Origin: Ranitomeya imitator
Taxonomy: Eukaryota
Length of the DNA: 64,000 nucleotides
Direction: 5' to 3'
Assembly: GCF_032444005.1 (NCBI RefSeq)
Contig: NC_091285.1
Coordinates: 12,648,001 to 12,712,000 of the forward strand
Below, piece after piece: positions 11,293 to 52,185 of the stretch (position 1 is its first letter; each line of letters opens with the position of its first letter). A program made the position numbers and the translations under genes. The notes under the pieces are model-generated. The model had not been told where the DNA came from. It searched no databases and was given only the letters and a program-made list of their open reading frames with translations.

Positions 11293-11798
11293 AATAAAGT
11301 ACCTAAATAAAACAAAAAGTGTAAAAAATTAAAAGTAAAATAAAAATATCATGTATACATTTTTATTTTAACAATGTTATGTCTGATTTCAGAAATAAAA
11401 AAACAGAAAAAAACTAGGGAGTGGTAACAGTTCACAGTTTAGGGGGCGCAAACTACTTGGCTTGCTATTGGTCTCGCGGTCCATGCTTTGACACCGCCAC
11501 CAGTGATGAGGAAATAAATTCTACCTCTACCCTAAGAACCTCAGAGACTTTACATTTCTACGTCACTACTGTACAAAACTAGAAATATTACCATTATACC
11601 CCTCACTAGCATAGACAACTTTCACTATTTTAAGACTCCTCAATACCATAGACCACCAGGGATGTTCCTGACATCCCTTCACTCAACCATGGAGTTAAAC
11701 AATAAAACCCTAGCCTTAGCTTCTTCTGAGCTCTTGTTCCCATACGTTAAGGAAGTCCCACTTGGAGATAACATGAATTTTCGACTATTTGTTAACAG

Positions 11799-11931
11799 AA
11801 AATTTGTCCAGGAGTGTCCCAGTGGTCTCATCACCCTCCATGAATTTCGCAAGTGTTTCTGTGATTGCACGACGGGAAAGCAATCCTCCGAGTATGCAGA
11901 ACAGATTTTCAGAGCACTGGATGACAATGGG
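11799..11931 (+). CDS. gcip: GCIP exon 2
   Basis: AG acceptor at 11797-11798; (R)KFVQECPSGLITLHEFRKCFCDCTTGKQSSEYAEQIFRALDDNG; EF1 with the family CPSG motif and the first half of the EF2 loop; donor GTAAG. Confidence 0.93.
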
Positions 11932-13737
11932 GTAAGAGGGATGGAATTGATAAATGTAATTTTTCATAAAGCAGCCAAGGGAGATGTATGGTGTGCCCAA
12001 AGGAAGGGCTTCTGAACCTACCTCACCACCATTGGTTCCCACTTCAGTGGTCCATGCAAAGTGTTTGGACGACTCTTACATTTATAGACAATGCCACATG
12101 TTGCTCATTCTCTTCAGTTGCTTCCTATGTACGGTAAGTAGCACAAATTCTTCTCTCTCTATTGGTGCTCGAGCAGTGGTCTACCTCACCTAACCCTTGT
12201 TCTGACCCTTCTCTGGTTTCAGACTAATAAGTTATGCTACTTTCATTGTCTTGCATTGATGGGTCTGGACTAGAGATAAGCAAATATTTTGAAATTCAAA
12301 TTTGTCAAATTTTCCCAGCAAATACGATTTGCTATGATTCCAATTCCCCTGAAAAGACTTACTGTATATGTCTCAGAAACCCTCCCATATTCTATTTCCT
12401 CACACACCAATCTTCTTCATTCATTGCTTTTACATACTCTCTGCAGTTTTTTTCATTGTTTTATGGCTTTTTCTCACTATTTCTATGGGTAAAGTCATGA
12501 GCTGTGGCGTTCATTCATTATCCAGATTCATCACAAAATGACTGCTGAATTTTCTGCTTTGGAAGGCTATGAAGGCCAGAATGCAAGTTATGATAATCCC
12601 ACCTGTTATATAATGTGATGTGATAGCTTCAAGGCATTTTAGGGAAGCCCATCCGGCAGTACCCGAGGTCTTGAAATCTTCTGCAGAGTGTGAAATAGTA
12701 ATAATTTTAGGCGATTTGCCCAAATCATATCACAAATTGTTTGAATTCAGCAAATCCCTGAAAATTCATCATCAATTTGATGCACATTAAATCAAATTGC
12801 TCATCTTTAGTCTCAATCTTTGGCTCAACTTTTTTCCATGAATCAAATCATAGGATCTTCTGATTTTTAGGGGTTGAAGCTCTTCTGGTAAAAGCATTCT
12901 CGTGAGACACTAGAATAATACATTTCTAAAGTTTTTTCACGTTATTAGTTGGGATTAACCTGAAAAACACACAGGATTTGCCAGTTTGATATTTTAAAAT
13001 TTGGGATTGTGGGAAAGGGACTTTGATTTATGGTTTCTTGGGTGAGGGAAGAACTCGAATATTAGGTTTCAATCCTATGTGTGATACATGAAGTCATTTC
13101 TTAAGTCTCCACACTCCCTTGTTATTTACATATTTAGGTTTCTGAGGTGCGTGTGTTTTCGAGCTAAGAGGTTGTACTTTTAGGCAGCCCCTTCACAACA
13201 AGAAGTCTCAGCACAAGTTAAAAGCTCAATTATATCAAGCATAATAACTTAGGACCCCCTTAAACATTCGACAGCAGTTGGCAGAATGATCATTCAGCCA
13301 AATGCTACCACTCCTGATTTCCCGACACATCTGCCCGGCTTGGTGGAGCTCTACTGTGTTTTCTATGAGAGCTGCTGCCAGAATCCTCATGTAGTGGCTT
13401 GACTCACAAAGAGCAAAATATGCAACATAGTTAGAGAATAGAGATCCAATAGACCAGATCTTTTTCTCCCCTGCTTGATGGTGAGAGTTGGGAGGCCCCT
13501 TACACATTAGTCCACCAGCCGATTGGCAGATTCTGGTGGGGTTTTGTCAAATGTCTATGGAGGCCTTTGAATATTTTGGCTTCCGGGGACTTAGGCTTAT
13601 GACAATTTATTAGAGGAAATTGATCAGTGAAAGAAGGGCGTCATGGCTAAATATAAAGGTTATAAACTGCTTACTCTTCACCTTGTTGTGATAAATAAGT
13701 AATGTTTTCATTGATCAAGTCACTTTACTGGTTATAG

Positions 13738-13887
13738 GACGGAATAGTAGACTTCCGAGAATATGCCACGGCCATCAGTATGCTTGCTCACGGGACTTCA
13801 GAGGACAAACTCAAGTGGTCTTTTAAGTTATACGACAAGGACAGTGACGGAGCCATCACCCGATTGGAAATGTTGGATATCATGAAG
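13738..13887 (+). CDS. gcip: GCIP exon 3
   Basis: DGIVDFREYATAISMLAHGTSEDKLKWSFKLYDKDSDGAITRLEMLDIMK; completes EF2 (DDNGDGIVDFRE) and contains EF3 (DKDSDGAITRLE); AG/GT bounded, 150 nt. Not in the ORF track. Confidence 0.93.
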
Positions 13888-14699
13888 GTTTGTGTAAATC
13901 TTTGGTAGAACTAAATTGGACTTAGATGGTTGCGAGCTTATGACATACTTTTTTCACAGGTGTATCTTAGAGCTTTTGGTCCTTATTTAACCTCCACCAC
14001 CTATTGTGTGTCTCCCAATATGATAGATGGGTCTTTGGACCTTCTCAAATTTCAGAGCTGGATGCGTCAACTACTATAACTCCAACCAAATCAGTCACTG
14101 TTTATGGGATGTTTTAGGAAAAAGTGGGGGGAACTTAGGCGACATAGCTATAATCTTTGGTGATCCATGAGTTTGCAAAAGTTCAAAATTAGCAATTTTC
14201 TCGAATTCGGATGGGAAATTCTATTGGCATCAACATTTTTCAAACCCAATTAAATATGTCCGATTATGCCCAGTGCAAAATATGCAAAAAATAAAGGCAA
14301 ATTATTACTCCCTTCCCCTTGTCTACGAAGTTGAGTACTTAGTTGTTCCGGTCCAGTCTTCACTCACAGGTTTCTGATGTTCTTCGCACCACAGGGCCCA
14401 TTGATTTTTTTAATGAGTGAGTGAGTATTACTTTTTTCATCCCCTTTTTGGTGCTTTTGAATCCAGTAAAATAGGGGAATAGCCCCTATTTTGTTGGATT
14501 TTTGTCAATAAAATCACTAAAAATTCAGATACTGGTTAAATTCAAGGTGAATTCGACTCGTTCCGAGTTATTCGTTCATCTTTTTGCCAATAAAATCACA
14601 AAAAATTCAGATCCTGGTGAAATTCGAGGTGAATTTGACTCACTTCCGAATGATTTGTTCATCTCTATGGTGTTACAAGTAATTATTTTTCTTCTACAG

Positions 14700-14805
14700 A
14701 CAGTGTATAAAATGAGCATCGCTGCTTCAATAGCCAAAGTCAATCCACCGACGGCAGAAGAGTGCACGAATCGCATTTTTATTCGCCTGGACAAAGACCA
14801 TAACG
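14700..14805 (+). CDS. gcip: GCIP exon 4
   Basis: TVYKMSIAASIAKVNPPTAEECTNRIFIRLDKDHN; acceptor CTTCTACAG; donor GTAAAG, phase 1. Confidence 0.93.
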
Positions 14806-15103
14806 GTAAAGCATCATGAAAATATGTTCTGTTGTGGAAAAGTTAAAGGTTATGCTCCATTGCTGTCCGTTTTTCCATGGAAATGAGGCTTTTTCATATA
14901 CCAAGACTTAAAAATTACATGATAATAAGACTTTTAGGTCTATAATTTTGACCTGATTGATCTCTAATTGTGAGTCTGTTTCTTTCATCAAATCCCCTGC
15001 ATTGACTCTTAGAAATATGAAACATTTCTGTCTTCCTGTCACCATCGGTGGAGTTGAGGAGCTCCAGTGTATAAACTGGATAAACAGTCTACACTAAGCT
15101 CAT

Positions 15104-15132
15104 GAGCTCCCCCTAGTGGAGGCTGTGGACAG
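15104..15132 (-). repeat. Solo copy of the core of the 57-bp satellite unit in GCIP intron 4
   Basis: Reverse complement reads CTGTCCACAGCCTCCACTAGGGGGAGCTC, 1-2 differences from array variants. Confidence 0.75.
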
Positions 15133-15511
15133 TCAGGATATAATAATATATCTCATTGTGCAAAAAAACCCAAGTCCTCGTGCGACTATGGGGATGGAAA
15201 GGTAAAAGTTATAGATGACCCTTGGAAGGAGTGGTGGAAAAAACAAAAGCACAAAAAAAAAAAATTCCCCTAATGTGAAGGAGTGTTTTATTACTCCTGC
15301 CCCCTTTACTCATCCTCCCAAGGGTCCAGCGCTGATTCTCCACCACTGCTCTAGATATTGTCTGGGCTGCTGATGTCACTTCGACAGCGCTGCAGCCAAT
15401 CAGTGAGCCCAAGTTGACGGCATGAAGCGCCCAGAGCCTCAACCTCAATTATTAGTTTCAACGCTGTCAACCTGTAGTCAATAACAGTGATCTCCTTTGT
15501 GTGTCTTTCAG

Positions 15512-15675
15512 CCATCATCAGTCTCCAGGAGTTTGTGGATGGCTCTCTGGATGATGAGTGGATTCGGGAGATGTTGGAGTGTGATCTCAGTACCGTGGAG
15601 ATACAACGACCGCCAAAGTGCATTCGCCTGCATTCCAGGTCCTCTAGAGAAAGCGTGTTACCTGCCAATCACTAG
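15512..15675 (+). CDS. gcip: GCIP exon 5 (terminal)
   Basis: (A)IISLQEFVDGSLDDEWIREMLECDLSTVEIQRPPKCIRLHSRSSRESVLPANH*. The five exons total 621 nt = 206 aa plus stop, with all phases compatible; closely resembles frog GCIP as recalled. Confidence 0.93.
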
Positions 15676-16916
15676 CGCCGACTTTTAGCCACATCCAGAA
15701 ACGTCTCTTCTGTACATATTTGCATATTCTCTGCCTCTTTGTGGAACTCACCTGCATAAATTAGAACTGTCGGCACATTAATATTTACTTTCCTTGGGTT
15801 CATCTTCTTTCTCCTTTTCATTGTTCAAATGCTGCCAATAATACAAAAAAATCCACCCCATCTTATTAATGGGGCTGTCTGACTTCTTCAAACATTTTTA
15901 TAAAAAGTAGAATTTTTGTGAAAATTTTTCACATGTGGAAACTTTAAAAATCACCAACTGTAGCCTCCATCACTTCCGAGAGGGACAGATTGCCATGAGG
16001 TTCCATTCTCAGTCACATGACCGCTGAGTCCTGTGATTGGCTACAGCAGTCAGGTGACAGGAATGGGACGTCTTCACTGTTCCTGTCACATGACTGCTGT
16101 GGCCAATCACAAATCTAAGCAAACAGGTGACCGATCTTGCTTCCTATCCGTCCATAGAGACTAGCACTCCAGTAACGGGAAGGAGGCAGCCGGTGAGGAC
16201 GGCTTCTTAGAACCTTTATCTAATCCCTCCCGGATGTAGGATCCTGTTTTATAAATATTTTTCTACCTAATTGTGTTTTCACCATATTTCACATTTGCTT
16301 TCGTGAATTTGATGAATCCTTTCTCTTGTTGTGTCCGGCAGGCAGCATCTCGTCAGGCAATATTCGAATCAGCGGGAAATTTGCTCTTCTAATACTTAAA
16401 GGGTTTGATGAAACCACAGGACCAGCCACGAAAAAAAACTGGGACTGACCATGAACTTAAAATTGTGTCTCCGTGTGCTGCAGTGTTGGATCTATTATTC
16501 CCTGTTATCAGCCATTATGGCATGGAGAGAAGCTGACTGGCAATTTCATATCAATGGCCCAGAAGTCAGGGGACCTCCCTGCCCCCACGGTCTCATCTCC
16601 ATGTCCAATATCTCCGGTGCTGGGAACCTGCAGAGACATTCACCTCCTGGGTGACAGATGCCATCAGCTCCTGGTATAAAGGAGACTCCAACAGTCTCGT
16701 TAGATTTTCCAACAATTTTGATTACCATAAACTCTCTTCCACTAAAAATCCCTATCATGATGTTTGGTAAAAAAAAGAACAACAAAAATTTAGGGTGTGA
16801 ATTTCTGATCAATTCACCTGAACTTGGCTCATTATATTGTGTAGAATAATTTATTTTCTAATACTCAAAATCCTTTGTATTGTCATGAAATAAAATAAGT
16901 GCTATGTGATTAAATT

Positions 16917-19900
16917 CTGTCTGTCTCTAAACACCACTAGGGGGAGCTCCCTGTATACAAAGACACATGATAAGATTCTGTCTGCAGCCACCACTAGGGG
17001 GAGCTCCCTGTATACAGAGATACATGATAAGATCCTGTCTGCAGCCACCACTAGGGGGAGCTCCCTGTATACAGAGATACATGATAAGATCCTGTCTGCA
17101 GCCACCACTAGGAGGAGCTCCCTGTATACAGAGATACATGATAAGATCCTGTCTGCAGTCACCACTAGGGGGAGCTCCTTGTATACAGAGATACATGATA
17201 AGATCCTGTCTGCAGACACCACTAGGGGGAGCTCCCTGTATACAGAGATACATGATAAGATCCTGTCTGCAGCCACCACTAGGGAGAGCTCCCTGTATAC
17301 AGAGATACATGATAAGATTCTGTCTGCAGCCACCACTAGGGGGAGCTCCCTGTATACAGAGATACATGATAAGATCCTGTCTGCAGCCACCACTAGGGGG
17401 AGCTCCCTGTATACAGAGATACATGATAAGATCCTGTCTGCAGCCACCACTAAGGGGAGCTCCCTGTATACAGAGATACATGATAAGATCCTGTCTGCAG
17501 TCACCACTAGGGGGAGCTCCCTGTATACAGAGATACATGATAAGATCCTGTCTGCAGCCACCACTAGGGGGAGCTCCCTGTATACAGAGATATATGATAA
17601 GATCCTGTCTGCAGTCACCACTAGGGGGAGCTCCCTGTATACAGAGATACATGATAAGATCCTGTCTGCAGTCACCACTAGGGGGAGCTCCCTGTATACA
17701 AAGATACATGATAAGATCCTGTCTGCAGTCACCACTAGGGGGAGCTCCCTGTATACAGATACATGATAAGATCCTGTCTGCAGTCACCACTAGAGGGAGC
17801 TCCCTGTATACAGAGATACATGATAAGATCCTGTATGCAGTCACCACTAGGGGGAGCTCCCTGTATACAGAGATACATGATAACACCGTCTGCAGCCACC
17901 ACTAGGGGGAGCTCCCTGTATACAGAGATACATGATAAGATCCTTTCTGCAGTCACCTCTAGGGGGAGCTCCCTGTATACAGAGATACATGATAAGATCC
18001 TGTCTGCAGTCACCACTAGGGGGAGCTCCCTGTATACAGAGATACATGATAAGATCCTGTCTGCAGTCACCACTAGGGGGAGCTCCCTGTATACAGAGAT
18101 ACATGATAAGATCCTGTCTGCAGCCACCACTAGGGGGAGCTCCCTGTATACAGAGATATATGATAAGATCCTGTCTGCAGTCACCACTAGGGGGAGCTCC
18201 CTGTATACAGAGATACATGATAAGATCCTGTCTGCAGTCACCACTAGGGGGAGCTCCCTGTATACAAAGATACATGATAAGATCCTGTCTGCAGTCACCA
18301 CTAGGGGGAGCTCCCTGTATACAGATACATGATAAGATCCTGTCTGCAGTCACCACTAGAGGGAGCTCCCTGTATACAGAGATACATGATAAGATCCTGT
18401 ATGCAGTCACCACTAGGGGGAGCTCCCTGTATACAGAGATACATGATAACACCGTCTGCAGCCACCACTAGGGGGAGCTCCCTGTATACAGAGATACATG
18501 ATAAGATCCTTTCTGCAGTCACCTCTAGGGGGAGCTCCCTGTATACAGAGATACATGATAAGATCCTGTCTGCAGTCACCACTAGGGGGAGCTCCCTGTA
18601 TACAGAGATACATGATAAGATCCTGTCTGCAGCCACCACTAGGGGGAGCTCCCTGTATACAGAGATAAATGATGAGATCCTGTCTGCAGTCACCACTAGG
18701 GGGAGCTCCCTGTATACAGAGATACATGATAAGATCCTGTCTGCAGCCACCACTAGGGGGAGCTCCCTGTATATAGAGATACATGATAAGATCCTGTCTG
18801 CAGCCACCACTAGGGGGAGCTCCCTGTATACAGAGATACATGATAAGATCCTGTCTGCAGTCTCCACTAGGGGGAGCTCCTTGTATACGGAGATACATGA
18901 TAACATCCTGTCTGCAGCCACCACTAGGGGGAGCTCCCTGTATACAGAGATACATGATAAGATCATGTCTGCAGTCACCACTAGGGGGAGCTCCCTGTAT
19001 ACAGAGATACATGATAAGATCCTGTCTGCAGCCACCACTAGGGGGAGCACCCTGTATACAGCGATACATGATAAGATCCTGTCTGCAGCCACCACTAGGG
19101 GGAGCTCCCTGTATACAGAGATACATGATAAGATCCTGTCTGCAGCCACCACTAGGGGGAGCACCCTGTATACAGCGATACATGATAAGATCCTGTCTGC
19201 AGCCACCACTAGGGGGAGCTCCCTGTATACAGAGATACATGATAACATCCTGTCTACAGCCACCACTATGGGGAGCTCCCTGTATACAGAGATACATGAT
19301 AAGATCCTGTCTGCAGCCACCACTAGGGGGAGCTCCCTGTATACCGAGATACATGATAAGATTCTGTCTGCAGTCACCACTAGGGGGAGCTCCCTGTATA
19401 CAGAGATACATGATAACATCCTGTCTACAGCCACCACTAGGGGGAGCTCCCTGTATACAGAGATACATGATAACATCCTGTCTACAGCCTCCACTATGGG
19501 GAGCTCCCTGTATACTGAGATACATGATAAGATCCTGTCTGCAGCCACCACTAGGGGGAGCTCCCTGTATACAGAGATACATGATAAGATACTGTATGCA
19601 GTCACCACTAGGGGGAGCTCCCTGTATACAGAGATACATGATAACAACCTGTCTACAGCCACCACGAGGGGGAGCTCCCTGTATACAGAGATACATGATA
19701 AGATCCTGTCTGCAGTCACCACTAGGGGGAGCTCCCTGTAAACAGAGATACATGATAACATCCTGTCTACAGCCACCACTATGGGGAGCTCCCTGTATAC
19801 AGAGATACATGATAAGATTCTGTCTGCAGCCACCACTAGGGGGAGCTCCCTGTATACAGAGATACATGATAAGATCCTGTCTGCAGCCACCACTAGGGGG

Positions 19901-22900
19901 AGCTCCCTATATACAACGATACATGATAAGATCCTGTCTGCAGTCACCACTAGGGGGAGCTCCCTGTATACAGAGACACATGATAAGATCCTGTCTGCAG
20001 CCACCACTAGGGGGAGCTCCCTGTATACAGAGATACATGATAAGATCCTGTCTGCAGCCACCACTAGGGGGAGCTCCCTGTATACAGAGATACATGATAA
20101 GATCCTGTCTGCAGTCACCACTAGGGGGAGCTCCCTGTATACAGAGATACATGATAAGATCCTGTCTGCAGCCACCACTAGGGGGAGCTCCCTGTATACA
20201 GAGATACATGATAAGATCCTGTCTGCAGTCACCACTAGGGGGAGCTCCCTGTATACAGAGATACATGATAAGATCCTGTCTGCAGTCACCACTAGGGGGA
20301 GCTCCCTGTATACAGAGATACATGATAAGATCCTGTCTGCAGCCACCACTAGGGGGAGCTCCCTGTATACAGAGATACATGATAAGATCCTGTCTGCAGT
20401 CACCACTAGGGGGAGCTCCCTGTATACAGAGATACATGATAAGATCCTGTCTGCAGTCACCACTAGGGGGAGCTCCCTGTATACAGAGATATGTGATAAG
20501 ATCCTGTCTGCAGTCACCACTAGGGGGAGCTCCCTGTATACAGAGATACATGATAAGATCCTGTCTGCAGCCACCACTAGGGGGAGCTCCCTGTATACAG
20601 AGATACATGATAAGATCCTGTCTGCAGTCACCACTAGGGGGAGCTCCCTGTATACAGAGATACGTGATAAGATCCTGTCTGCAGCCACCACTAGGGGGAG
20701 CTCCCTGTATACAGAGATACATGATAAGATCATGTCTGCAGCCACCACTAGGGGGAGCTCCATGTATACAGAGATATGTGATAAGATCCTGTCTGCAGTC
20801 ACCACTAGGGGGAGCTCCCTGTATACAGAGATACATGATAAGATCCTGTCTGCAGCCACCACTAGGGGGAGCTCCCTGTATACAGAGATACGTGATAAGA
20901 TCCTGTCTGCAGCCACCACTAGGGGGAGCTCCCTGTATACAGAGATACATGATAAGATTCTGTCTGCAGCCACCACTAGGGGGAGCTCCCTGTATACAGA
21001 GATACATGATAACATCCTGTCTGCATCCACCACTAGGGGGAGCTCCCTGTATACAGAGAGACATGATAACATCCTGTCTACAGCTTCCACTATGGGGAGC
21101 TCCCTGTTTACAGAGATACATGATAAGATACTGTCTGCAGTCACCACTAGGGGGAGCTCCCTGTATACAGAGATACATGATAAGATACTGTCTGCAGTCA
21201 CCACTAGGGGGAGCTCCCTGTATACAGAGATACATGATAAGATACTGTCTGCAGTCACCACTAGGGGGAACTCCCTGTATACAGAGATACATGATAAGAT
21301 CCTGTCTGCAGCCACCACTAGGGGGAGCTCCCTGTATACAGAGATACATGATAAGATCCTGTCTGCAGTCACCACTAGGGGGAGCTCCCTGTATACAGAG
21401 ATACATGATAAGATCCTGTCTGCAGCCACCACTAGGGGGAGCTCCCTGTATACAGAGATACATGATAAGATCCTGTCTGCAGCCACCACTAGGGGGAGCT
21501 CCCTGTATACAGAGATACATGATAAGATCCTGTCTGCAGTCACCACTAGGGGGAGCTCCCTGTATACAGAGATACATGATAAGATCCTGTCTGCAGCCAC
21601 CACTAGGGGGAGCTCCCTGTATACAGAGATACATGATAAGATCCTGTCTGCAGTCACCACTAGGGGGAGCTCCCTGTATACAGAGATACATGATAAGATC
21701 CTGTCTGCAGTCACCACTAGGGGGAGCTCCCTGTATACAGAGATACATGATAAGATCCTGTCTGCAGCCACCACTAGGGGGAGCTCCCTGTATACAGAGA
21801 TACATGATAAGATCCTGTCTGCAGTCACCACTAGGGGGAGCTCCCTGTATACAGAGATACATGATAAGATCCTGTCTGCAGTCACCACTAGGGGGAGCTC
21901 CCTGTATACAGAGATATGTGATAAGATCCTGTCTGCAGTCACCACTAGGGGGAGCTCCCTGTATACAGAGATACATGATAAGATCCTGTCTGCAGCCACC
22001 ACTAGGGGGAGCTCCCTGTATACAGAGATACATGATAAGATCCTGTCTGCAGTCACCACTAGGGGGAGCTCCCTGTATACAGAGATACGTGATAAGATCC
22101 TGTCTGCAGCCACCACTAGGGGGAGCTCCCTGTATACAGAGATACATGATAAGATCATGTCTGCAGCCACCACTAGGGGGAGCTCCATGTATACAGAGAT
22201 ATGTGATAAGATCCTGTCTGCAGTCACCACTAGGGGGAGCTCCCTGTATACAGAGATACATGATAAGATCCTGTCTGCAGCCACCACTAGGGGGAGCTCC
22301 CTGTATACAGACATACGTGATAAGATCCTGTCTGCAGCCACCACTAGGGGGAGCTCCCTGTATACAGAGATACATGATAAGATTCTGTCTGCAGCCACCA
22401 CTAGGGGGAGCTCCCTGTATACAGAGATACATGATAACATCCTGTCTGCATCCACCACTAGGGGGAGCTCCCTGTATACAGAGAGACATGATAACATCCT
22501 GTCTACAGCTTCCACTATGGGGAGCTCCCTGTTTACAGAGATACATGATAAGATACTGTCTGCAGTCACCACTAGGGGGAGCTCCCTGTATACAGAGATA
22601 CATGATAAGATACTGTCTGCAGTCACCACTAGGGGGAGCTCCCTGTATACAGAGATACATGATAAGATACTGTCTGCAGTCACCACTAGGGGGAGCTCCC
22701 TGTATACAGAGATACATGATAAGATCCTGTCTGCAGCCACCACTAGGGGGAGCTCCCTGTATACAGAGATACATGATAAGATCCTGTCTGCAGTCACCAC
22801 TAGGGGGAGCTCCCTGTATACAGAGATACATGATAAGATCCTGTCTGCAGCCACCACTAGGGGGAGCTCCCTGTATACAGAGATACATGATAAGATCCTG

Positions 22901-25900
22901 TCTGCAGCCACCACTAGGGGGAGCTCCCTGTAATCAGAGATACATGATAAGATCCTGTCTGCAGCCACCACTAGGGGGAGCTCCCTGTATACAGAGATAC
23001 GTGATAAGATCCTGTCTGCAGTCACCACTAGGGGGAGCTCCCTGTATACAGAGATACATGATAAGATCCTGTCTGCAGCCACCACTAGGGGGAGCTCCCT
23101 GTATACAGAGATACATGATAAGATCCTGTCTGCAGCCACCACTAGGGGGAGCTCCCTGTATACAGAGATACATGATAAGATCCTGTCTGCAGTCACCACT
23201 AGGGGGAGCTCCCTGTATACAGAGATACATGATAAGATCCTGTCTGCAGCCACCACTAGGGGGAGCTCCCTGTATACAGAGATACATGATAAGATCATGT
23301 CTGCAGCCACCACTAGGGGGAGCTCCCTGTATACAGAGATACGTGATAAGATCCTGTCTGCAGTCACCACTAGGGGGAGCTCCCTGTATACAGAGATACA
23401 TGATAAGATCCTGTCTGCAGCCACCACTAGGGGGAGCTCCCTGTATACAGAGATACGTGATAAGATCCTGTCTGCAGCCACCACTAGGGGGAGCTCCCTG
23501 TATACAGAGATACATGATAAGATTCAGTCTGCAGCCACCACTAGGGGGAGCACCCTGTATACAGAGATACATGATAAGATCCTGTCTGCAGCCACCACTA
23601 GGGGGAGCTCAATGTATACAGAGATACATGATAAGATCCTGTCTGCAGCCACCACTAGGGGGAGCTCCCTGTATACAGAGATACATGATAAGATCCTGTC
23701 TGCAGCCACCACTAGGGGGAGCTCTCTGAATACAGAGATACATGATAACATCCTGTCTACATCCTCCACTATGAGGAGCTCCCTGTATACAGAGATACAT
23801 GATAAGATCCTGTCTGCAGCCACCACTAGGGGGAGCTCCCTGTATACAGAGATACATGATAAGATACTGTCTGCAGTCACCACTAGGGGGATCTCCCTGT
23901 ATACAGAAATACATGATAACATCCTGTCTACAGCCACCACTAGGGGGAGCTCCCTGTATACAGAGATACATGATAAGATCCTGTCTGCAGTCACCACTAG
24001 GGGGAGCTCCCTGTATACAGAGATACATGATAAGATCCTGTCTGCAGCCACCACTAGGGGGAGCTCCCTGTATACAGAGATACATGATAAGATCCTGTCT
24101 GCAGTCACCACTAGGGGGAGCTCCCTGTATACAGATATACATGATAAGATACTGTCTGCAGTCACCACTAGGGGGAGCTCCCTGTATACAGAAATACATG
24201 ATAACATCCTGTCTACAGCCACCACTAGGGGGAGCTCCCTGTATACAGAGATACATGATAACATCCTGTCTGCAGCCTCCACTATGAGGAGCTCCCTGTT
24301 TACAGAGATACATGATAAGATTCTGTCTGCAGCCACCACTAGGGGGAGCTCCCTGTATACAGAGATATATGATAAGATCCTGTCTGCATCCACCACTAGG
24401 GGGAGCTCCCTGAATACAGAGATACATGATAACATCCTGTCTACATCCTCCACTATGAGGAGCTCCCTGTATACAGAGATACATGATAAGATCCTGTCTG
24501 CAGCCACCACTAGGGGGAGCTCCCTGTATACAGATATACATGATAAGATACTGTCTGCAGTCACCACTAGGGGGATCTCCCTGTATACAGAGATTCATGA
24601 TAACATCCTGTCTACAGCCACCACTAGGGGGAGCTCCCTGTATACAGAGATACATGATAAGATCCTGTCTGCAGTCACCACTAGGGGGAGCTCCCTGTAT
24701 ACAGAGATACATGATAAGATCCTGTCTGCAGCCACCACTAGGGGGAGCTCCCTGTATACAGAGATACATGATAAGATCCTGTCTGCAGCCACCACTAGGG
24801 GGAGCTCCCTGTATACAGATATACATGATAAGATACTGTCTGCAGTCACCACTAGGGGGAGCTCCCTGTATACAGAGATACATGATAACATCCTGTCTAC
24901 AGCCACCACTAGGGGGAGCTCCCTGTATACAGAGATACATGATACGATCCTGTCTGCAGTCACCACTAGGGGGAGCTCCCTGTATACAGAGATACATGAT
25001 AACATCCTGTCTACAGCCACCACTATGGGGAGCTCCCTGTATACAGAGATACATGATAAGATTCTGTCTGCAGCCACCACTAGGGGGAGCTCCCTGTATA
25101 GAGAGATACATGATAAGATCCTGTCTGCAGCCACCACTAGGGGGAGCTCCCTATATACAGAGATACATGATAAGATCTTGTCTGCAGTCACCACTAGGGG
25201 GAGCTCCCTGTATACAGAGATACATGATAAGATCCTGTCTGCAGCCACCACTAGGGGGAGCTCCCTGTATACAGAGATACATGATAAGATCCTGTCTGCA
25301 GCCACCACTAGGGGGAGCTCCCTGTATACAGAGATACATGATAAGATCCTGTCTGCAGTCACCACTAGGGGGAGCTCCCTGTATACAGAGATACATGATA
25401 AGATCCTGTCTGCAGCCACCACTAGGGGGAGCTCCCTGTATACAGAGATACATGATAAGATCATGTCTGCAGCCACCACTAGGGGGAGCTCCCTGTATAC
25501 AGAGATACGTGATAAGATCCTGTCTGCAGCCACCACTAGGGGGAGCTCCCTGTATACAGAGATACATGATAAGATCCTGTCTGCAGCCACCACTAGGGGG
25601 AGCTCCCTGTATACAGAGATACGTGACAAGATCCTGTCTGCAGCCACCACTAGGGGGAGCACCCTGTATACAGAGATACATGATAAGATCCTGTCTGCAG
25701 CCACCACTAGGGGGAGCTCCCTGTATACAGAGATACATGATAAGATTCTGTCTGCAGCCACCACTAGGGGGAGCTCCCTGTATACAGAGATACATGATAA
25801 GATCCTGTCTGCAGCCACCACTAGGGGGAGCTCCCTATATACAGAGATACATGATAAGATCCTGTCTGCAGTCACCACTAGGGGGAGCTCCCTGTATACA

Positions 25901-28900
25901 GAGATACATGATAAGATCCTGTCTGCAGCCACCACCAGGGGGAGCTCCCTGTATACAGAGATACATGATAAGATCCTGTCTGCAGCCACCACTAGGGGGA
26001 GCTCCCTGTATACAGAGATACATGATAAGATCGTGTCTGCAGTCACCACTAGGGGGAGCTCCCTGTATACAGAGATACATGATAAGATCCTGTCTGCAGC
26101 CACCACTAGGGGGAGCTCCCTGTATACAGAGATACATGATAAGATCCTGTCTGCAGCCACCACTAGGGGGAGCTCCCTGTATACAGAGATACGTGATAAG
26201 ATCCTGTCTGCAGTCACCACTAGGGGGAGCTCCCTGTATACAGAGATACATGATAAGATCCTGTCTGCAGCCACCACTAGGGGGAGCTCCCTGTATACAG
26301 AGATACGTGATAAGATCCTGTCTGCAGCCACCACTAGGGGGAGCTCCCTGTATACAGAGATACATGATAAGATCCTGTCTGCAGTCACCACTAGGGGGAG
26401 CTCCCTGTATACAGAGATACATGATAAGATCCTGTCTGCAGCCACCACTAGGGGGAGCTCCCTGTATACAGAGATACATGATAAGATCCTGTCTGCAGTC
26501 ACCACTAGGGGGAGCTCCCTGTATACAGAGATACATGATAAGATCCTGTCTGCAGTCACCACTAGGGGGAGCTCCCTGTATACAGAGATATGTGATAAGA
26601 TCCTGTCTGCAGTCACCACTAGGGGGAGCTCCCTGTATACAGAGATACATGATAAGATCCTGTCTGCAGCCACCACTAGGGGGAGCTCCCTGTATACAGA
26701 GATACATGATAAGATCCTGTCTGCAGTCACCACTAGGGGGAGCTCCCTGTATACAGAGATACGTGATAAGATCCTGTCTGCAGCCACCACTAGGGGGAGC
26801 TCCCTGTATACAGAGATACATGATAAGATCATGTCTGCAGCCACCACTAGGGGGAGCTCCATGTATACAGAGATATGTGATAAGATCCTGTCTGCAGTCA
26901 CCACTAGGGGGAGCTCCCTGTATACAGAGATACATGATAAGATCCTGTCTGCAGCCACCACTAGGGGGAGCTCCCTGTATACAGAGATACGTGATAAGAT
27001 CCTGTCTGCAGCCACCACTAGGGGGAGCTCCCTGTATACAGAGATACATGATAAGATTCTGTCTGCAGCCACCACTAGGGGGAGCTCCCTGTATACAGAG
27101 ATACATGATAACATCCTGTCTGCATCCAACACTAGGGGGAGCTCCCTGTATACAGAGAGACATGATAACATCCTGTCTACAGCCTCCACTATGGGGAGCT
27201 CCCTGTTTACAGAGATACATGATAAGATACTGTCTGCAGTCACCACTAGGGGGAGCTCCCTGTATACAGAGATACATGATAAGATACTGTCTGCAGTCAC
27301 CACTAGGGGGAGCTCCCTGTATACAGAGATACATGATAAGATACTGTCTGCAGTCACCACTAGGGGGAGCTCCCTGTATACAGAGATACATGATAAGATC
27401 CTGTCTGCAGTCACCACTAGGGGGAGCTCCCTGTATACAGAGATACATGATAAGATCCTGTCTGCAGCCACCACTAGGGGGAGCTCCCTGTATACAGAGA
27501 TACATGATAAGATCCTGTCTGCAGCCACCACTAGGGGGAGCTCCCTGTAATCAGAGATACATGATAAGATCCTGTCTGCAGCCACCACTAGGGGGAGCTC
27601 CCTGTATACAGAGATACGTGATAAGATCCTGTCTGCAGTCACCACTAGGGGGAGCTCCCTGTATACAGAGATACATGATAAGATCCTGTCTGCAGCCACC
27701 ACTAGGGGGAGCTCCCTGTATACAGAGATACATGATAAGATCCTGTCTGCAGCCACCACTAGGGGGAGCTCCCTGTATACAGAGATACATGATAAGATCC
27801 TGTCTGCAGTCACCACTAGGGGGAGCTCCCTGTATACAGAGATACATGATAAGATCCTGTCTGCAGCCACCACTAGGGGGAGCTCCCTGTATACAGAGAT
27901 ACATGATAAGATCATGTCTGCAGCCACCACTAGGGGGAGCTCCCTGTATACAGAGATACGTGATAAGATCCTGTCTGCAGTCACCACTAGGGGGAGCTCC
28001 CTGTATACAGAGATACATGATAAGATCCTGTCTGCAGCCACCACTAGGGGGAGCTCCCTGTATACAGAGATACGTGATAAGATCCTGTCTGCAGCCACCA
28101 CTAGGGGGAGCTCCCTGTATACAGAGATACATGATAAGATTCTGTCTGCAGCCACCACTAGGGGGAGCACCCTGTATACAGAGATACATGATAAGATCCT
28201 GTCTGCAGCCACCACTAGGGGGAGCTCAATGTATACAGAGATACATGATAAGATCCTGTCTGCAGCCACCACTAGGGGGAGCTCCCTGTATACAGAGATA
28301 CATGATAAGATCCTGTCTGCAGCCACCACTAGGGGGAGCTCTCTGAATACAGAGATACATGATAACATCCTGTCTACATCCTCCACTATGAGGAGCTCCC
28401 TGTATACAGAGATACATGATAAGATCCTGTCTGCAGCCACCACTAGGGGGAGCTCCCTGTATACAGAGATACATGATAAGATCCTGTCTGCAGTCACCAC
28501 TAGGGGGAGCTCCCTGTATACAGAGATACATGATAAGATCCTGTCTGCAGCCACCACTAGGGGGAGCTCCCTGTATACAGATATACATGATAAGATACTG
28601 TCTGCAGTCACCACTAGGGGGAGCTCCCTGTATACAGAGATACATGATAACATCCTGTCTACAGCCACCACTAGGGGGAGCTCCCTGTATACAGAGATAC
28701 ATGATAACATCCTGTCTGCAGCCTCCACTAGGGGGAGCTCCCTGTATACAGAGATATATGATAAGATCCTGTCTGCATCCACCACTAGGGGGAGCTCCCT
28801 GAATACAGAGATACATCATAACATCCTGTCTATATCCTCCACTATGAGGAGCTCCCTGTATACAGAGATACATGATAAGATCCTGTCTGCAGCCACCACT

Positions 28901-31375
28901 AGGGGGAGCTCCCTGTATACAGATATACATGATAAGATACTGTCTGCAGTCACCACTAGGGGGATCTCCCTGTATACAGAGATTCATGATAACATCCTGT
29001 CTACAGCCACCACTAGGGGGAGCTCCCTGTATACAGAGATACATGATAAGATCCTGTCTGCAGTCACCACTAGGGGGAGCTCCCTGTATACAGAGATACA
29101 TGATAAGATCCTGTCTGCAGCCACCACTAGGGGGAGCTCCCTGTATACAGAGATACATGATAAGATCCTGTCTGCAGCCACCACTAGGGGGAGCTCCCTG
29201 TATACAGATATACATGATAAGATACTGTCTGCAGTCACCACTAGGGGGAGCTCCCTGTATACAGAGATACATGATAACATCCTGTCTACAGCCACCACTA
29301 GGGGGAGCTCCCTGTATACAGAGATACATGATAAGATCCTGTCTGCAGTCACCACTAGGGGGAGCTCCCTGTATACAGAGATACATGATAAGATCCTGTC
29401 TGCAGCCACCACTAGGGGGAGCTCCCTGTATACAGAGATACATGATAAGATCCTGTCTGCAGTCACCACTAGGGGGAGCTCCCTGTATACAGATATACAT
29501 GATAAGATACTGTCTGCAGTCACCACTAGGGGGAGCTCCCTGTATACAGAGATACATGATAACATCCTGTCTACAGCCACCACTAGGGGGAGCTCCCTGT
29601 ATACAGAGATACATGATAAGATCCTGTCTGCAGTCACCACTAGGGGGAGCTCCCTGTATACAGAGATACATGATAACATCCTGTCTACAGCCACCACTAG
29701 GGGGATCTCCCTGTATACAGAGATTCATGATAACATCCTGTCTACAGCCACCACTAGGGGGAGCTCCCTGTATACAGAGATACATGATAAGATCCTGTCT
29801 GCAGTCACCACTAGGGGGAGCTCCCTGTATACAGAGATACATGATAAGATCCTGTCTGCAGTCACCACTAGGGGGAGCTCCCTGTATACAGAGATACATG
29901 ATAACATCCTGTCTACAGCCACCACTATGGGGAGCTCCCTGTATACAGAGATACATGATAAGATTCTGTCTGCAGCCACCACTAGGGGGAGCTCCCTGTA
30001 TAGAGAGATACATGATAAGATCCTGTCTGCAGCCACCACTAGGGGGAGCTCCCTATATACAGAGATACATGATAAGATCTTGTCTGCAGTCACCACTAGG
30101 GGGAGCTCCCTGTATACAGAGATACATGATAAGATCCTGTCTGCAGCCACCACTAGGGGGAGCTCCCTGTATACAGAGATACATGATAAGATCCTGTCTG
30201 CAGTCACCACTAGGGGGAGCTCCCTGTATACAGAGATACATGATAAGATCCTGTCTGCAGCCACCACTAGGGGGAGCTCCCTGTATACAGAGATACATGA
30301 TAAGATCATGTCTGCAGCCACCACTAGGGGGAGCTCCCTGTATACAGAGATACATGATAAGATCCTGTCTGCAGCCACCACTAGGGGGAGCTCCCTGTAT
30401 ACAGAGATACGTGATAAGATCCTGTCTGCAGCCACCACTAGGGGGAGCACCCTGTATACAGAGATACATGATAAGATCCTGTCTGCAGCCACCACTAGGG
30501 GGAGCTCCCTGTATACAGAGATACATGATAAGATTCTGTCTGCAGCCACCACTAGGGGGAGCTCCCTGTATACAGAGATACATGATAAGATCCTGTCTGC
30601 AGCCACCACTAGGGGGAGCTCCCTATATACAGAGATACATGATAAGATCCTGTCTGCAGTCACCACTAGGGGGAGCTCCCTGTATACAGAGATACATGAT
30701 AAGATCCTCTCTGCAGCCACCACCAGGGGGAGCTCCCTGTATACAGAGATACATGATAAGATCCTGTCTGCAGCCACCACTAGGGGGAGCTCCCTGTATA
30801 CAGAGATACATGATAAGATCGTGTCTGCAGTCACCATTAGGGGGAGCTCCCTGTATACAGAGATACATGATAAGATCCTGTCTGCAGCCACCACTAGGGG
30901 GAGCTCCCTGTATACAGAGATACATGATAAGATCCTGTCTGCAGCCACCACTAGGGGGAGCTCCCTGTATACAGAGATACGTGATAAGATCCTGTCTGCA
31001 GTCACCACTAGGGGGAGCTCCCTGTATACAGAGATACATGATAAGATTCTGTCTGCAGCCACCACTAGGGGGAGCTCCCTGTATACAGAGATACGTGATA
31101 AGATCCTGTCTGCAGCCACCACTAGGGGGAGCTCCCTGTATACAGAGATACATGATAAGATTCTGTCTGCAGCCACCACTAGGGGGAGCACCCTGTATAC
31201 AGAGATACATGATAAGATCCTGTCTGCAGCCACCACTAGGGGGAGCTCCCTGTATACAGAGATACATGATAAGATCCTGTCTGCAGCCACCACTAGGGGG
31301 AGCTCCCTGTATACAGAGATACATGATAAGATCCTGTTTGCAGCCACCACTAGGGGGAGCTCCCTGTATACAGAG
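16917..31375 (+). repeat. 57-bp minisatellite array 1 (~253 units)
   Basis: Unit CTGTATACAGAGATACATGATAAGATCCTGTCTGCAG(C/T)CACCACTAGGGGGAGCTCC; 14.46 kb divided by 57. Confidence 0.99.
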
Positions 31376-33654: not shown

Positions 33655-34262
33655 TAGCTGCCACTAGGTGGCGTTACACTATATTTAATATTCTTACTGT
33701 GCTTCCTGCAGATGACACTAGATGGCAGTGCACTGTAAAGATTATTTCTATTATTTCCCTGCAGTGGACACTATTATTATTATTATTATCATTTATTTAT
33801 ATAGCGCCATTAATTCCATGGTGCTGTACATGAGAAAAGGGGTTATGTACAGGGTTATAGATAACACTAGATAGAAGCGCACTACATAGATTATTCCTAT
33901 TATTTCCCTGTAGTGGACACTAGATGGCAGCGCACTCTATAGATTATTCCTAATTTTTCCATGCAGTGGCCACTAGATGGCAGTGCACTATATAGATTAT
34001 TCTTATTGTATTCTCTGCAGCCGCCACTAGATGGCAGCGCACTATATAGATTATTCTTATTGTATTCTCTGCAGCCGCCACTAGATGGCACCGCACTATA
34101 TAGATTTTTCTTATTGTATTCTCTGCAGCCGCCACTAGATGGCAGTGCACTATATAGATTTTTCTTATTGTATTCTCTGCAGCCGCCACTAGATGGCACC
34201 GCTATAGTGCATATTCTTCCTGCATTGCCTGCAGCCGCCACTAGATGGCACCGCACTACATT
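33655..34262 (+). repeat. 54-bp tandem array carrying CTCF consensus motifs
   Basis: CCACTAGATGGC at 34024, 34078, 34132, 34186 (54-bp period) and 34238; more diverged copies at ~33661, 33715, 33917 and 33969. Confidence 0.92.
33772..33845 (-). mobile_element. L2-clade LINE 3' tail
   Basis: (ATT)n followed by TATAGCGCCATTAATTCCATGG; same terminus as the L2 at 61530; interrupts the 54-bp array. Confidence 0.7.
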
Positions 34263-41555: not shown

Positions 41556-41769
41556 ATGGCCGTCCTCGCCTCCCCCAGCACGGACCAGGGGTACATACGA
41601 ACCGTCCTGAGCAATGAACACTTCATGGACCTGGATACGTCCACCTTGGCTCTACCCTCCGAGGAGAAGCTGTCAATCAGCCGCCAAGACCTGGAGAAAG
41701 CCATGAGGATCCAGCACCAGGTCCAGCTCACCATGGCAAGGAAGACCACCAAGAAGAGTCTGGCTAATG
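41556..41769 (+). CDS. pkp2: Plakophilin-2 first coding exon
   Basis: MAVLASPSTDQGYIRTVLSNEHFMDLDTSTLALPSEEKL...RIQHQVQLTMARK...ANG matches the PKP2 head motifs (GYIRTVL, LDSSSLALPSE, RIQEQVQQTLARK); phase-1 donor GTGAGT. Confidence 0.9.
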
Positions 41770-42729
41770 GTGAGTTAACCGCCGTTGGCACTATTGCTAT
41801 TGGTTATACCCACCTGTGCCAGGGTAGAGCCAGCCATATAAGGTGCGAAAGCTGGAGGAAAAGAGACGGTAACGAGGGGTAATGCAATGAGGTCAGGTGG
41901 AGGCAGAGAAAGCCGCACACTTTATAGTTCGGGGCGCTTTGCAGAATTGGCATTGAGGCCGAAGACTGCAAGTCACTTCCTAAATTATGTTTTATGTGTT
42001 TGGCCATTTTATAGGGATATTCCTGATAACTGTTACATGGGTGTGGACCCCCACTCGTTGCCAGAACAGACGACTTGTGTCCCCATTTCTCTCTGGTTGC
42101 AAGATAACGGACATTGCTGTGACCCCCAACGATCAAGAAAAAAGGCAATTAATTTTGTCGCCATTTATTTGTGATTCTTTTTGGCTAAAATTTTGCGTCC
42201 CCATGATTGACATTACTGAGGACTTGAGTCTGTAGTTCTCCCCCTATCTGCAAGATCGTGGTCACCACTGGGACCACCATCGATTGCCAGAGAGGAGGAC
42301 TTATGTCCCTGTTTTGCCTGGTCCTCCCATGGCTGCAAGATCTCACTCACCATAGTGGCCCCCAATCATCTCCAGAATTGAGGACTTGTGTATTGATTTC
42401 TCCTCAGGCTACAAACTAGTGGTCAGTAGGAACTGAGTGCGGCATTTTGTTTGGCTATCTTCGGGTAGCTTCAGTGTTATAAATATGAATAAAGCGCCAT
42501 GAGTGTGCATAACCTCTTGGCCCTGTTTTGGTGATCGTTGGAGGTCCCATTGGTGGTCACGATCTTGTGGCCAGAGAAGAATCAAGGACGAATTGCAAGT
42601 TCTCCATTTTGGCGATTAACAGGGGTCATGAATAGAACATGAGAAGCATGCACGACCTGCTCAAGTTCTCTGTTTTGTTGATCGCTGGGGACCTAGATCT
42701 TGCAGCCAGGGAGGAATCAGTGGAAAAAG

Positions 42730-44873: not shown

Positions 44874-45250
44874 AGGGAATCTATCACTTGGAATAAATAT
44901 GTACTTTTTTAACCTGGTATAAATGTCTCTGATCTTCTGAATCCAGGGCTGTTTTTCTTTTGTTTCTACGCCTCTGCGTTCCTGAGATATGGCCCACTAA
45001 TCACTGATCATAAATCAAGTCTTTTTTCCCAGTGGGAGTGATCCCGAGCACTTTTTTGTGGGCGTGATTTTAAGAACCACACCCCATTGGATAGCAAGGC
45101 TGCATTTACATCCAGGGAAGAAAGGGACATATCTCAGGAACGGAGAGGCGCAGGAACAAAAGAAAAACATCGCCGGATTCAGGAGAACAGCGGCTTTTAG
45201 ACCAGATAAAAAAAGAAAATCATATATTTATGTTAAGTGTCAGGTTCTCT
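44874..45250. mobile_element. T2/Kolobok-type MITE
   Basis: TTAA-AGGGAATCTATCA ... TCAGGTTCTCT-GTAA; internal inverted arms GTTCCTGAGATATG / CATATCTCAGGAAC. Confidence 0.7.
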
Positions 45251-51974: not shown

Positions 51975-52185
51975 GGACCATGGCCTCACCCTGTGCTCTT
52001 CAGGGATCCGGTCCACACCCAGGACCTCCCAACACAGAGGCCACTCAGGATCACGACCTCACATCGTGCTCTTCAGGTATCCGGTCCACACAAAGGACCT
52101 CCCAACACAGAGGCCACTCAGGGTCACGGCCTCACCAGGTGCTCTTCAAGAATCCAGTCCCCACTCTGGACCTCCCAATACCCAG
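51975..52185. repeat. ~74-bp tandem repeat, ~3 copies
   Basis: GTGCTCTTCAG..ATCCGGTCCACAC...GGACCTCCCAACACAGAGGCCACTCAGG recurring. Confidence 0.7.

Follow-up and report, generated by a model that had tools for sequence, protein, structure and literature searches.

The tandem array of about 14.5 kb that separates a calcium-sensor gene from pkp2 in the dendrobatid poison frog Ranitomeya imitator is best explained, with a probability of roughly 0.6, as a local block of a dispersed 57-bp satellite family, whose CTCF-type motif was inherited with the unit and not selected as an insulator at this position. The array (array A, Table 1) lies within the window, i.e., the whole stretch of 64,000 nucleotides that was analysed, together with two further arrays of the same satellite, one array of a related 54-bp unit and a solo unit fragment. 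Beyond the window, public read sets of three related organisms contain roughly 1e5-8e5 units of the family per genome.

Table 1 Features of the window, with positions counted from its first nucleotide.
Feature	Position	Strand	Evidence
NCS-family (GCAP/GCIP-like) EF-hand gene	11773..16914	+	Reading frames; PDB matches to NCS-1 and GCAP2; spliced RNA contig; poly(A) hexamers
Solo 57-bp unit fragment	15104..15132	-	Exact motif; nhmmer E = 2.5e-6; PWM 18.9 bits
Array A, 57-bp satellite, 253 units	16917..31375	+	TRF, motif count, segmentation, PWM, CpG, variant-block map
Array D, related 54-bp unit, ~10 copies	33655..34262	+	TRF; PWM; alignment; CpG
Array B, same 57-bp satellite as array A, ~40 units	38655..40964	+	TRF; 32 exact motifs; 38 units >=15 bits
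pkp2 (plakophilin-2)	41556..63659	+	tblastn with P0001 and P0010; source names
Array C, same 57-bp satellite as array A, ~21 units	48081..49311	+	TRF; 21 exact motifs; sequence; exons

An earlier note on this DNA had described array A as 14.5 kb of about 250 units of 57 bp with a CpG-free consensus, and both descriptions hold. Tandem Repeats Finder (TRF) places the array at 16932-31375 (period 57, 253.5 copies, 95% matches, 0% indels), and a degenerate partial unit extends its left edge to 16917; the edges of the 57-bp satellite arrays in general grade into degenerate units. Unit segmentation showed that the units are ~97% like the consensus and on average 1.7 letters off, with 63 of the 253 being perfect. 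The consensus unit contains no CpG, and the array as a whole has 30 CpGs in 14,459 bases (observed/expected 0.034). Head-to-tail units that are nearly identical to each other are characteristic of satellites and minisatellites, and array A has this organisation. Multi-unit variant blocks recur along the array and a 566-bp segment is duplicated internally, which points to growth by unequal exchange. These duplications form irregular blocks, and a strict higher-order repeat was rejected, as the distance between units is flat across lags (2.7-3.1) with small dips at 10 and 25. Two other proposals for the array were also discarded. As the unit is free of stops in four of six frames, open reading runs reach 1,740 codons, a by-product of its sequence that does not indicate coding. 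Likewise, hairpin-driven slippage found no support when three units were folded as single-stranded DNA (z = -0.82 vs shuffles).

The 57-bp unit contains a strong match to the CTCF motif. The window contains 278 exact copies of the 14-mer CCACTAGGGGGAGC, where 0 are expected, and 224 of them fall inside array A on the + strand, with 0 on the - strand. Hence, of the claim that every unit holds the motif in one orientation, the shared orientation stands, while the exact 14-mer is present in 88.5% of the units. The core matches the CTCF consensus CCASYAGRKGGCRS at 13 of 14 positions, and direct reading of the motif agrees with the single C>A difference claimed earlier. A position weight matrix (PWM) with manually entered MA0139.1 counts, not those of the JASPAR file, gives the unit 20.0 of 27.5 bits, which corresponds to a relative score of 0.93 and p ~1e-7. 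Across array A, scores of 9 bits or more are reached by 249 of 253 units and scores of 15 bits or more by 237, and the site density amounts to 17,500 per Mb. As background, the upstream module of CTCF sites, bound by ZF9-11, lies farther from the core than 3 bases; in the 57-bp unit, TGCAG sits just 3 bases upstream of the core. The consensus unit further contains three palindromes, namely CTGCAG, GGGAGCTCCC, which fits an NF-kB-type pattern, and CTGTATACAG. A human T2T survey used a cut-off of p<1e-6, for which ~80% true sites is cited there, and strong CTCF motif matches are mostly bound in mammals (bioRxiv 10.64898/2026.07.18.739380). The earlier note had staked its idea on a score within the range of bound sites, and the p ~1e-7 of the unit is better than this cut-off. 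Judged by its sequence, the unit is thus a strong CTCF-type match and a candidate site, which frog CTCF is probably able to bind on naked DNA. Since the unit lacks CpG, DNA methylation could not block such binding directly.

The related arrays in the window place this motif in a wider context. The pkp2 start codon lies 592 bp downstream of the end of array B, whereas array C is located within pkp2 intron 1, with a right edge that fades to a degenerate unit. Array D, built from the 54-bp unit, carries the textbook CTCF core CCACTAGATGGCAGC with PWM scores of 19-23 bits, and does contain CpG (observed/expected 0.60). The 54-bp and 57-bp units can be aligned over ~36 bases, including CTGCAG, the core and CT-TATA, and the core of the 54-bp family differs from that of the 57-mer chiefly at degenerate positions of the motif. 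In older copies of the 54-bp family, the core is the best-kept stretch, which hints at a possible constraint on the motif in that family. The solo fragment, on the opposite strand, is found in the calcium-sensor gene, within its last coding intron. In total, tandem repeats make up 39.9% of the window and comprise at least 12 unit types, among which the CTCF-like motif is limited to the 57-bp and 54-bp families. As the other unit types expanded without the motif, tandem expansion in this region does not depend on it.

Two genes flank array A. The coding exons of the upstream NCS-family gene were located near 11773-11931, 13738-13887, 14700-14806 and from ~15500 to a donor at 15635; RNA supports this donor, the intron at 15636-16338 and the 3' exon from 16339. 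Its poly(A) signals (16889 and 16909) directly adjoin array A, which is intergenic and begins at the 3' end of this gene. The exons of pkp2 were identified at 41556-41777 (exon 1), 60781-60891 (exon 2) and 62964-63659 (exon 3). The location previously given for the array, between a retinal gcip gene and pkp2, is therefore correct for pkp2 and for the calcium-sensor family, while the name gcip was not confirmed. Arrays A-C together amount to 70% of the interval between the calcium-sensor gene and pkp2, with array A filling most of it.

The abundance and dispersal of its unit also bear on the nature of array A, and were assessed in public runs, all of them plain DNA or RNA libraries. In one DNA run (X1), summed word depth over the units was 2.9-8.7 million vs ~11 on unique flank, and depth ratios were alike in the other two DNA runs; the resulting figures of roughly 1.3e5-7.9e5 units, or 7-45 Mb, are rough estimates, as summed contig depths are not a true copy number. 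The same run contained 28,239 different contigs of the family, whose loose ends showed low agreement, suggesting many different flanks. Furthermore, 31-mers of array A are common to at least nine organism labels, and DNA runs of six organisms contain 63-73% of them. The left junction of array A is bridged by contigs of two related organisms (A and C) despite a flank divergence of ~2-8%, indicating that the array predates their split. High copy number and arrays at many separate loci are expected of a satellite, and the 57-bp family displays both. Compared with two other repeats of the flank, it is represented ~100-2,000 times less per copy in RNA. The proposal of a structure built for this locus was not borne out, as the unit is part of a satellite dispersed through the genome and recurs at the pkp2 promoter and in intron 1; with ~1e5-8e5 units per genome, a purpose-built insulator here is unlikely. 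Array A is one among many arrays of this family, with no indication of a dedicated insulator between gcip and pkp2.

These observations can be accommodated by a neutral or selfish satellite block. The founder unit of the family would have carried a strong, CpG-free, forward match to the CTCF core, which later units inherited. Array A then probably grew in place, as segments of several units were exchanged unequally, in a region of which tandem repeats with many unrelated units make up 40%. The ends of frog chromosomes are rich in minisatellites and recombinogenic (PMC10794172), and the tandem-repeat content of the window would fit such a location. In nuclei, most units would probably be nucleosome-packed or heterochromatic and unoccupied, because the sites of the family outnumber the ~110,000-217,000 CTCF molecules measured per mammalian cell (PMC6579579), a count that is mammalian and not from frog. 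Should a minority be bound, the + orientation would make the array a one-sided barrier, at which cohesin coming from the direction of pkp2 would stall. Counted against the neutral-satellite reading were a PWM match equal to that of typical bound sites, the CpG-free unit, the hint of constraint on the core of the 54-bp family, the position of array B at the pkp2 promoter and the roughness of the copy-number estimate.

Alternatively, array A could be a functional super-insulator that is substantially occupied by CTCF in some tissues, acts as a strong directional barrier to loop extrusion separating the calcium-sensor gene from pkp2, and is kept by selection. This is improbable, although several features would fit: the strong match in 237 of 253 co-oriented units, the absence of CpG from the unit, the extent of the array across most of an interval between genes expected to differ in tissue expression, and the left junction retained in two related organisms. 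Against it, the ~1e5-8e5 units of the family occupy many loci, introns included, and within array A the core shows no evidence of selection. Here, mean variation is 0.010 in the core vs 0.031 at other positions (Mann-Whitney p = 0.10), a test that is powerless either way, and a motif-killing variant, CCACTATGGGGAGC, with G to T at an invariant G, has spread to 13 units. In addition, a spacing of 57 bp would, if fully occupied, leave nucleosomes no room.

It could also be speculated that the family works genome-wide, binding a sizeable share of CTCF and thereby buffering the factor or setting many domain borders, so that turnover of arrays rewires folding in poison frogs. The sites of the family are several times the 39,797 of the human genome at p<1e-6, and their density of 17,500 per Mb in array A exceeds the highest value given for a human class, 5,023 per Mb. 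Moreover, the family is common to many species, and the motif-rich gamma-satellites of primates provide a precedent. Yet motif-bearing DXZ4 arrays can be heterochromatic and unbound (PMC3491370), and titrating an essential factor would be costly, making silencing of the arrays the likelier outcome. Such a reservoir or architectural role is as doubtful as the local insulator.

Slightly less probable still is that the resemblance to CTCF is incidental and that the unit is recognised by another factor or by none. The three palindromes readable in the consensus would allow this, and the loss of affinity caused by A instead of the C of GGC, which is well conserved, may exceed what the matrix predicts. 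However, a 19-base match at p ~1e-7 is improbable by chance in a 57-bp unit, and the sister 54-bp family has the textbook version of the motif. Least probable is motif-driven instability, in which a protein on the core, CTCF or another, would cause replication to stall or make chromatin accessible to meiotic breaks and so preferentially amplify motif units, for while two related families with different spacers kept the core and recombination in frogs, which are without PRDM9, is tracked by tandem repeats (PMC10794172), ten or more further minisatellite families expanded in the window without a CTCF-like motif and single-strand folding was no better than shuffles (z = -0.82).

Signs of a transposon origin were sought in and around the arrays. 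Apart from degenerate units, BLAST against the window found nothing common to the sequences flanking arrays A-C, and the window yielded neither tRNAs with ARAGORN nor RNA families with Rfam. Consensus sequences of loose ends from thousands of contigs agree only ~50%. An array carried by a transposon of the SINE B2 type was rejected, as recognisable ends or an RNA-gene head were not found at the array edges, though a parent element may lie elsewhere in the genome. Literature searches returned no paper with the exact unit sequence, and those combining CTCF with frog, Xenopus, minisatellite, satellite or satellitome returned no description of such arrays. The 57-bp family is absent from a paper on tandem repeats of Rana temporaria, and the poison-frog genome papers compared do not mention satellites.

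Several known systems resemble the frog family in part. In rodents, SINE B2 elements reportedly drove an expansion of CTCF sites, and the likeness lies in one repeat family seeding very many motifs across a genome and related species. SINE B2 is, however, a retrotransposon present as single copies with transposon hallmarks, whereas the frog family is a head-to-tail satellite at whose array edges such hallmarks were not found. Dense tandem sites for an insulator protein on selfish DNA are also seen in the gypsy insulator of Drosophila, where 12 tandem Su(Hw) sites form a strong barrier with experimentally shown function. Gypsy differs in the protein and in having its twelve sites inside a retrotransposon, while the frog array has hundreds of motif-defined sites. 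The tandem, co-oriented units of DXZ4/Dxz4 and FIRRE on the mammalian X, each with a CTCF site, are similar in layout. Orientation-dependent long-range contacts are documented for Dxz4, and arrays of this type are bound on the inactive X and heterochromatic on the active X. Yet DXZ4 and FIRRE units are of kilobase scale, contain CpG, occupy a single locus and are bound depending on chromatin state, unlike the CpG-free, 57-bp frog unit at many loci, so that the frog family falls outside this type.

Enrichment in CTCF motifs, with conservation of the class among related species, is also seen in primate gamma-satellites and other motif-rich human satellites (bioRxiv 10.64898/2026.07.18.739380), and a barrier role against the spread of heterochromatin has been proposed for gamma-satellite. 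Its monomers are ~215 bp, GC-rich and methylation-sensitive, in contrast to the 57-bp, CpG-free frog unit, and the motif-rich human classes are pericentromeric or acrocentric, whereas the frog family lies among genes. Finally, the minisatellites of extended subtelomeres in frogs resemble the 57-bp family in their short-unit tandem arrays, for which growth by unequal crossing-over has been proposed (Bredeson et al. 2024, PMC10794172). These families are shared by members of a clade and differ from clade to clade, yet the units described there derive from transposons, one example in pipid frogs being the tail of a SINE (52 bp), and a CTCF motif is unmentioned (PMC10794172).

Spreading of CTCF motifs by repeats is already known from DXZ4, gamma-satellite and SINE B2, whose CpG-containing sites number in the thousands and are spaced by hundreds of bases or by kilobases. 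The frog satellite, by contrast, has a strong CpG-free motif each 57 bases and apparently provides more strong matches than the entire human genome. Either all these motifs are silenced by the cell without CpG methylation, or CTCF operates at a very different stoichiometry in these genomes of 6-7 Gb. That a substantial share of the several hundred thousand CpG-free satellite motifs of poison frogs is bound, shaping barriers or buffering CTCF, seems unlikely, though less so than either functional alternative set out above. If the bound share were substantial, gain, loss or inversion of arrays would make or erase directional barriers to loop extrusion, or buffer free CTCF. If true, this would be a satellite-built layer of three-dimensional genome organisation at a scale unseen in any vertebrate.

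The 57-bp satellite lying between the neuronal calcium-sensor gene and pkp2 (array A) is a tandem series of near-identical units, preceded from about 16917 by a degenerate partial unit recognized by sequence inspection. Segmentation of the array yields 253 units that are on average 1.7 letters off the consensus, 63 of them perfect. The 14-mer CCACTAGGGGGAGC occurs 278 times across the window, as compared to 0 in 100 shuffles, and within array A it is found 224 times on the + strand and never on the - strand, with a spacing of 57 bases in 192 of 223 intervals. The array, period and orientation described in the earlier note are thus confirmed, while the exact 14-mer is present in 88.5% of units rather than in every one. 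The absence of CpG from the consensus unit was likewise borne out, and array A contains 30 CpG in 14,459 bases (observed/expected 0.034 versus 0.35 for the whole window). No N runs were found across the window.

Predicted CTCF sites were scored using a working copy of the JASPAR MA0139.1 counts (column sums 908-913), and all scores are provisional. The best site of the 57-bp unit, CCACCACTAGGGGGAGCTC, reaches 20.0 of a maximum of 27.5 bits (relative score 0.93, p ~1e-7), and replacing its deviant A with C gives 23.1 bits (p ~7e-9). The related 54-bp unit of array D carries the textbook core CCACTAGATGGCAGC, preceded by CTGCAG as in the 57-mer, and scores 19-23 bits (p ~6e-9 to 2e-7). In a human T2T survey, the cut-off for a site is FIMO p<1e-6, at which ~80% are cited as true, and 39,797 such sites are reported genome-wide, with 5,023 per Mb in the densest class (bioRxiv 10.64898/2026.07.18.739380). 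Judged by this threshold, the score of the 57-bp unit does not fall below the range of bound sites, and the proposed strong CTCF-like motif stands; its density in array A amounts to 17,500 CTCF-type sites per Mb.

Repeat arrays, genes and other features of the window (sites: PWM hits at the bit scores given)
Feature	Position	Strand	Details
TRIM-like open frame	3301-5052	+	584 codons, single exon, RING-type N-terminus
30-bp repeat	4342-4449		3.6 copies, within span of the open frame
Possible inverted duplication	7022-7792
42-bp array	1150-2156
Upstream gene exons	near 11773-11931, 13738-13887, 14700-14806, from ~15500	+
Upstream gene intron	15636-16338	+	GT..AG
Upstream gene 3' exon	16339 to at least 16680	+	RNA contig, organism A
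Solo fragment of the 57-bp unit	15104-15132	-
Stretches beside arrays	15361-15421, 31376-31420		GCTGCAG near CCAATCA/TGATTGG
High-depth segment	16459-16519		60 bases, inside upstream gene's 3' exon
Array A (Tandem Repeats Finder)	16932-31375	+	57 bp, 253.5 copies, 95% matches, no indels; >=15 bits 237/253, >=9 bits 249/253
Array D	33655-34262		54 bp
Array B	38655-40964	+	57 bp, ~40 units (Tandem Repeats Finder, exact-motif count); >=15 bits 38 of ~40, >=9 bits 39
Array C	48081-49311	+	57 bp, ~21 units (Tandem Repeats Finder, exact-motif count); sites >=15 bits 22 (all), >=9 bits 22
34-bp array	42734-43831
35-bp array	56654-57790
30-bp array	58359-60291		pkp2 intron 1
pkp2 exons 1-3	41556-41777, 60781-60891, 62964-63659		P0001 mapped
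Single CTCF-type hits	33424, 47252, 47405	-	20.3, 13.9, 14.0 bits

The 57-bp unit is not confined to this locus. Among the 31-mers of array A, 63-73% are found in DNA runs of six organisms (coded labels of public sequencing runs, separate from the array letters) and 44-46% in RNA runs of three further ones, while its unique flank is found only in organisms A and B, and weakly in C. For a depth comparison, contigs of three DNA runs and one RNA run were placed on 15300-17100. The resulting copy estimates are orders of magnitude, as they rest on summed contig depth, which does not give a true copy number and, where placements overlap, may overstate it two- to three-fold: 2.6e5-7.9e5 units per genome, or 15-45 Mb, in run X1 of organism A (unique flank word depth ~11, three-unit summed depth 2.9-8.7 million), 1.3e5-4.1e5 units or 7-24 Mb in X27 of organism C (~18; 2.3-7.4 million), and 2.1e5-5.7e5 units or 12-32 Mb in X25 of organism D (~2.6; 0.55-1.5 million). 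Using the 6.8 Gb given in the Oophaga pumilio genome paper, this corresponds to a few tenths of a percent of the genome. In X1, 28,239 contigs were placed and their loose ends agree only to ~50%, which points to 57-bp units sitting beside many different flanks. The proposal of the earlier note that array A is a locus-specific super-insulator is weakened by this clade-wide dispersal at ~1e5-8e5 units per genome. At its own locus, the left junction of array A is crossed by contigs of organisms A (15956-16957) and C (16742-16949) whose flanks are ~2-8% divergent from the window, and the array therefore predates the split of these lineages.

How array A grew can be read from its internal structure. 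No strict higher-order period is present, the mean inter-unit distance being flat across lags 1-40. Multi-unit variant strings recur, e.g., near 20914, 22340, and 27070, and the aberrant-unit pairs 17728/17842 and 18294/18408 reveal an internal duplication of 566 bp; such a pattern is characteristic of unequal exchange in multi-unit register. The array edges grade into decayed units, and BLAST of the flanks of arrays A, B, and C against the window revealed no common sequence except degenerate units, so neither a composite element present in several copies nor a segmental duplication accounts for the three. Tandem repeats of at least 12 unit types (periods 28-147) make up 39.9% of the window, and only the 57-bp and 54-bp families have CTCF-type hits, showing that tandem-repeat expansion in this region is not motif-dependent. 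Such repeat-rich DNA would be in keeping with descriptions of the chromosome ends of frogs, which lack PRDM9, as minisatellite-rich and recombinogenic (PMC10794172). Within pkp2 intron 1, the 30-bp minisatellite has a TCCC-GTATAC-G-CAG stretch in common with the 57-mer (weak nhmmer hits, E 0.2-10); it could have arisen from the 57-bp family by deletion, or the match may be chance. The two GCTGCAG-containing stretches beside the arrays, the left one at about 200-fold depth, are probably an interspersed-repeat fragment, for which no link to the 57-bp satellite was found. Screening the entire window against Rfam at gathering thresholds returned no match.

The gene upstream of array A, called gcip in the earlier note, can be assigned only to the neuronal-calcium-sensor family, its exon 2 matching both NCS-1 and GCAP2 chains. 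Its open frame in genomic DNA reaches 15672, which is probably not the true C-terminus, since a contig of RNA reads from a related organism reveals an intron and a further 3' exon. The high-depth segment within this exon has a word depth of ~53,000 in organism A, 8,300 in D, and 94 in C, beside single-copy depths of 11, 2.6, and 18, respectively, which suggests a short repeat that multiplied in certain lineages, not others. As the only AATAAA/ATTAAA hexamers in 16300-16940 lie at 16889 and 16909, array A would begin about where the transcript should end. Downstream, the placement of pkp2 proved correct: the exon 3 frame, used as query in a profile-free search, retrieved the 831-residue protein P0001 (plakophilin-2, Ranitomeya variabilis), which mapped the first three exons, and the best fit was the R. 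imitator protein (99.6% in exon 3), which places the window in a dendrobatid poison frog, either Ranitomeya or a very close relative. Array A lies between the genes, array B stops 592 bases short of the pkp2 start codon, and array C falls within intron 1 of pkp2; arrays A, B, and D occupy 70% of the ~24.9-kb interval between the two genes.

Within array A, variation is slightly lower at the 14 core positions than at the remaining 43 (mean 0.010 versus 0.031), a difference that is not significant (p = 0.10) in a test of little power, since selection cannot see a single unit out of 253. The motif's most invariant G is changed to T in 13 units of the array, the change having spread within a repeated block. 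The 54-bp and 57-bp units are alignable over ~36 bases, the core is the best-kept part, and its differences fall mostly at degenerate CTCF-consensus positions, a hint of possible constraint from only two non-independent families. That the consensus is conserved across species is to be expected wherever a satellite reaches very high copy number, and is no sign of constraint.

The zinc fingers of frog CTCF are nearly identical to the mammalian ones, which together with the good site score makes binding of the 57-bp unit on naked DNA plausible, and indeed rather probable. Occupancy in the nucleus is a different matter. CTCF numbers ~110,000 molecules in U2OS and 217,000 in mouse ES cells, with half-occupancy at ~70,000 peaks (PMC6579579). 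Based on the depth estimate, the 57-bp family alone would provide two to sixteen hundred thousand sites per diploid frog nucleus, and as this exceeds the CTCF counts, mammalian though these are, most sites would have to be empty. Full occupancy at 57-base spacing would also remove every nucleosome over 14 kb. DXZ4 offers a precedent, a motif-bearing array that is bound on one chromosome, whereas on the other it is heterochromatic and unbound (PMC3491370). In addition, RNA contains little of the satellite relative to its copy number, the RNA/DNA depth ratio being ~1e-3 as compared to 0.14 and 2.3 for two further repeats located in this flank. We consider it best, at a probability of roughly six in ten, to read array A as a neutral or selfish satellite block whose CTCF-like motif would be inherited and, for the most part, unoccupied. 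Should a fraction of the units be bound, their forward orientation predicts, by the convergent rule, stalling of cohesin coming from the pkp2 side. The single - strand hits downstream of the + arrays would be convergent partners for them, if any are bound.

By class, array A is ordinary satellite DNA; it is unusual in its density (one strong predicted site per 57 bases), lack of CpG, and scale. It could work like CTCF macrosatellites, though it lacks their kilobase CpG-containing single-locus unit, like the motif-rich primate gamma-satellites, or like the SINE B2 expansion of CTCF sites, from which it differs in that no transposon hallmarks were found by flank BLAST against the window or by the ARAGORN and Rfam scans. 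No published description of the 57-bp satellite was found, including by literature searches by sequence, and satellites and tandem repeats go unmentioned in the poison-frog genome papers examined. For the family as a whole, the satellite raises a testable question, namely how the genome copes with several hundred thousand CTCF motifs that are methylation-proof.
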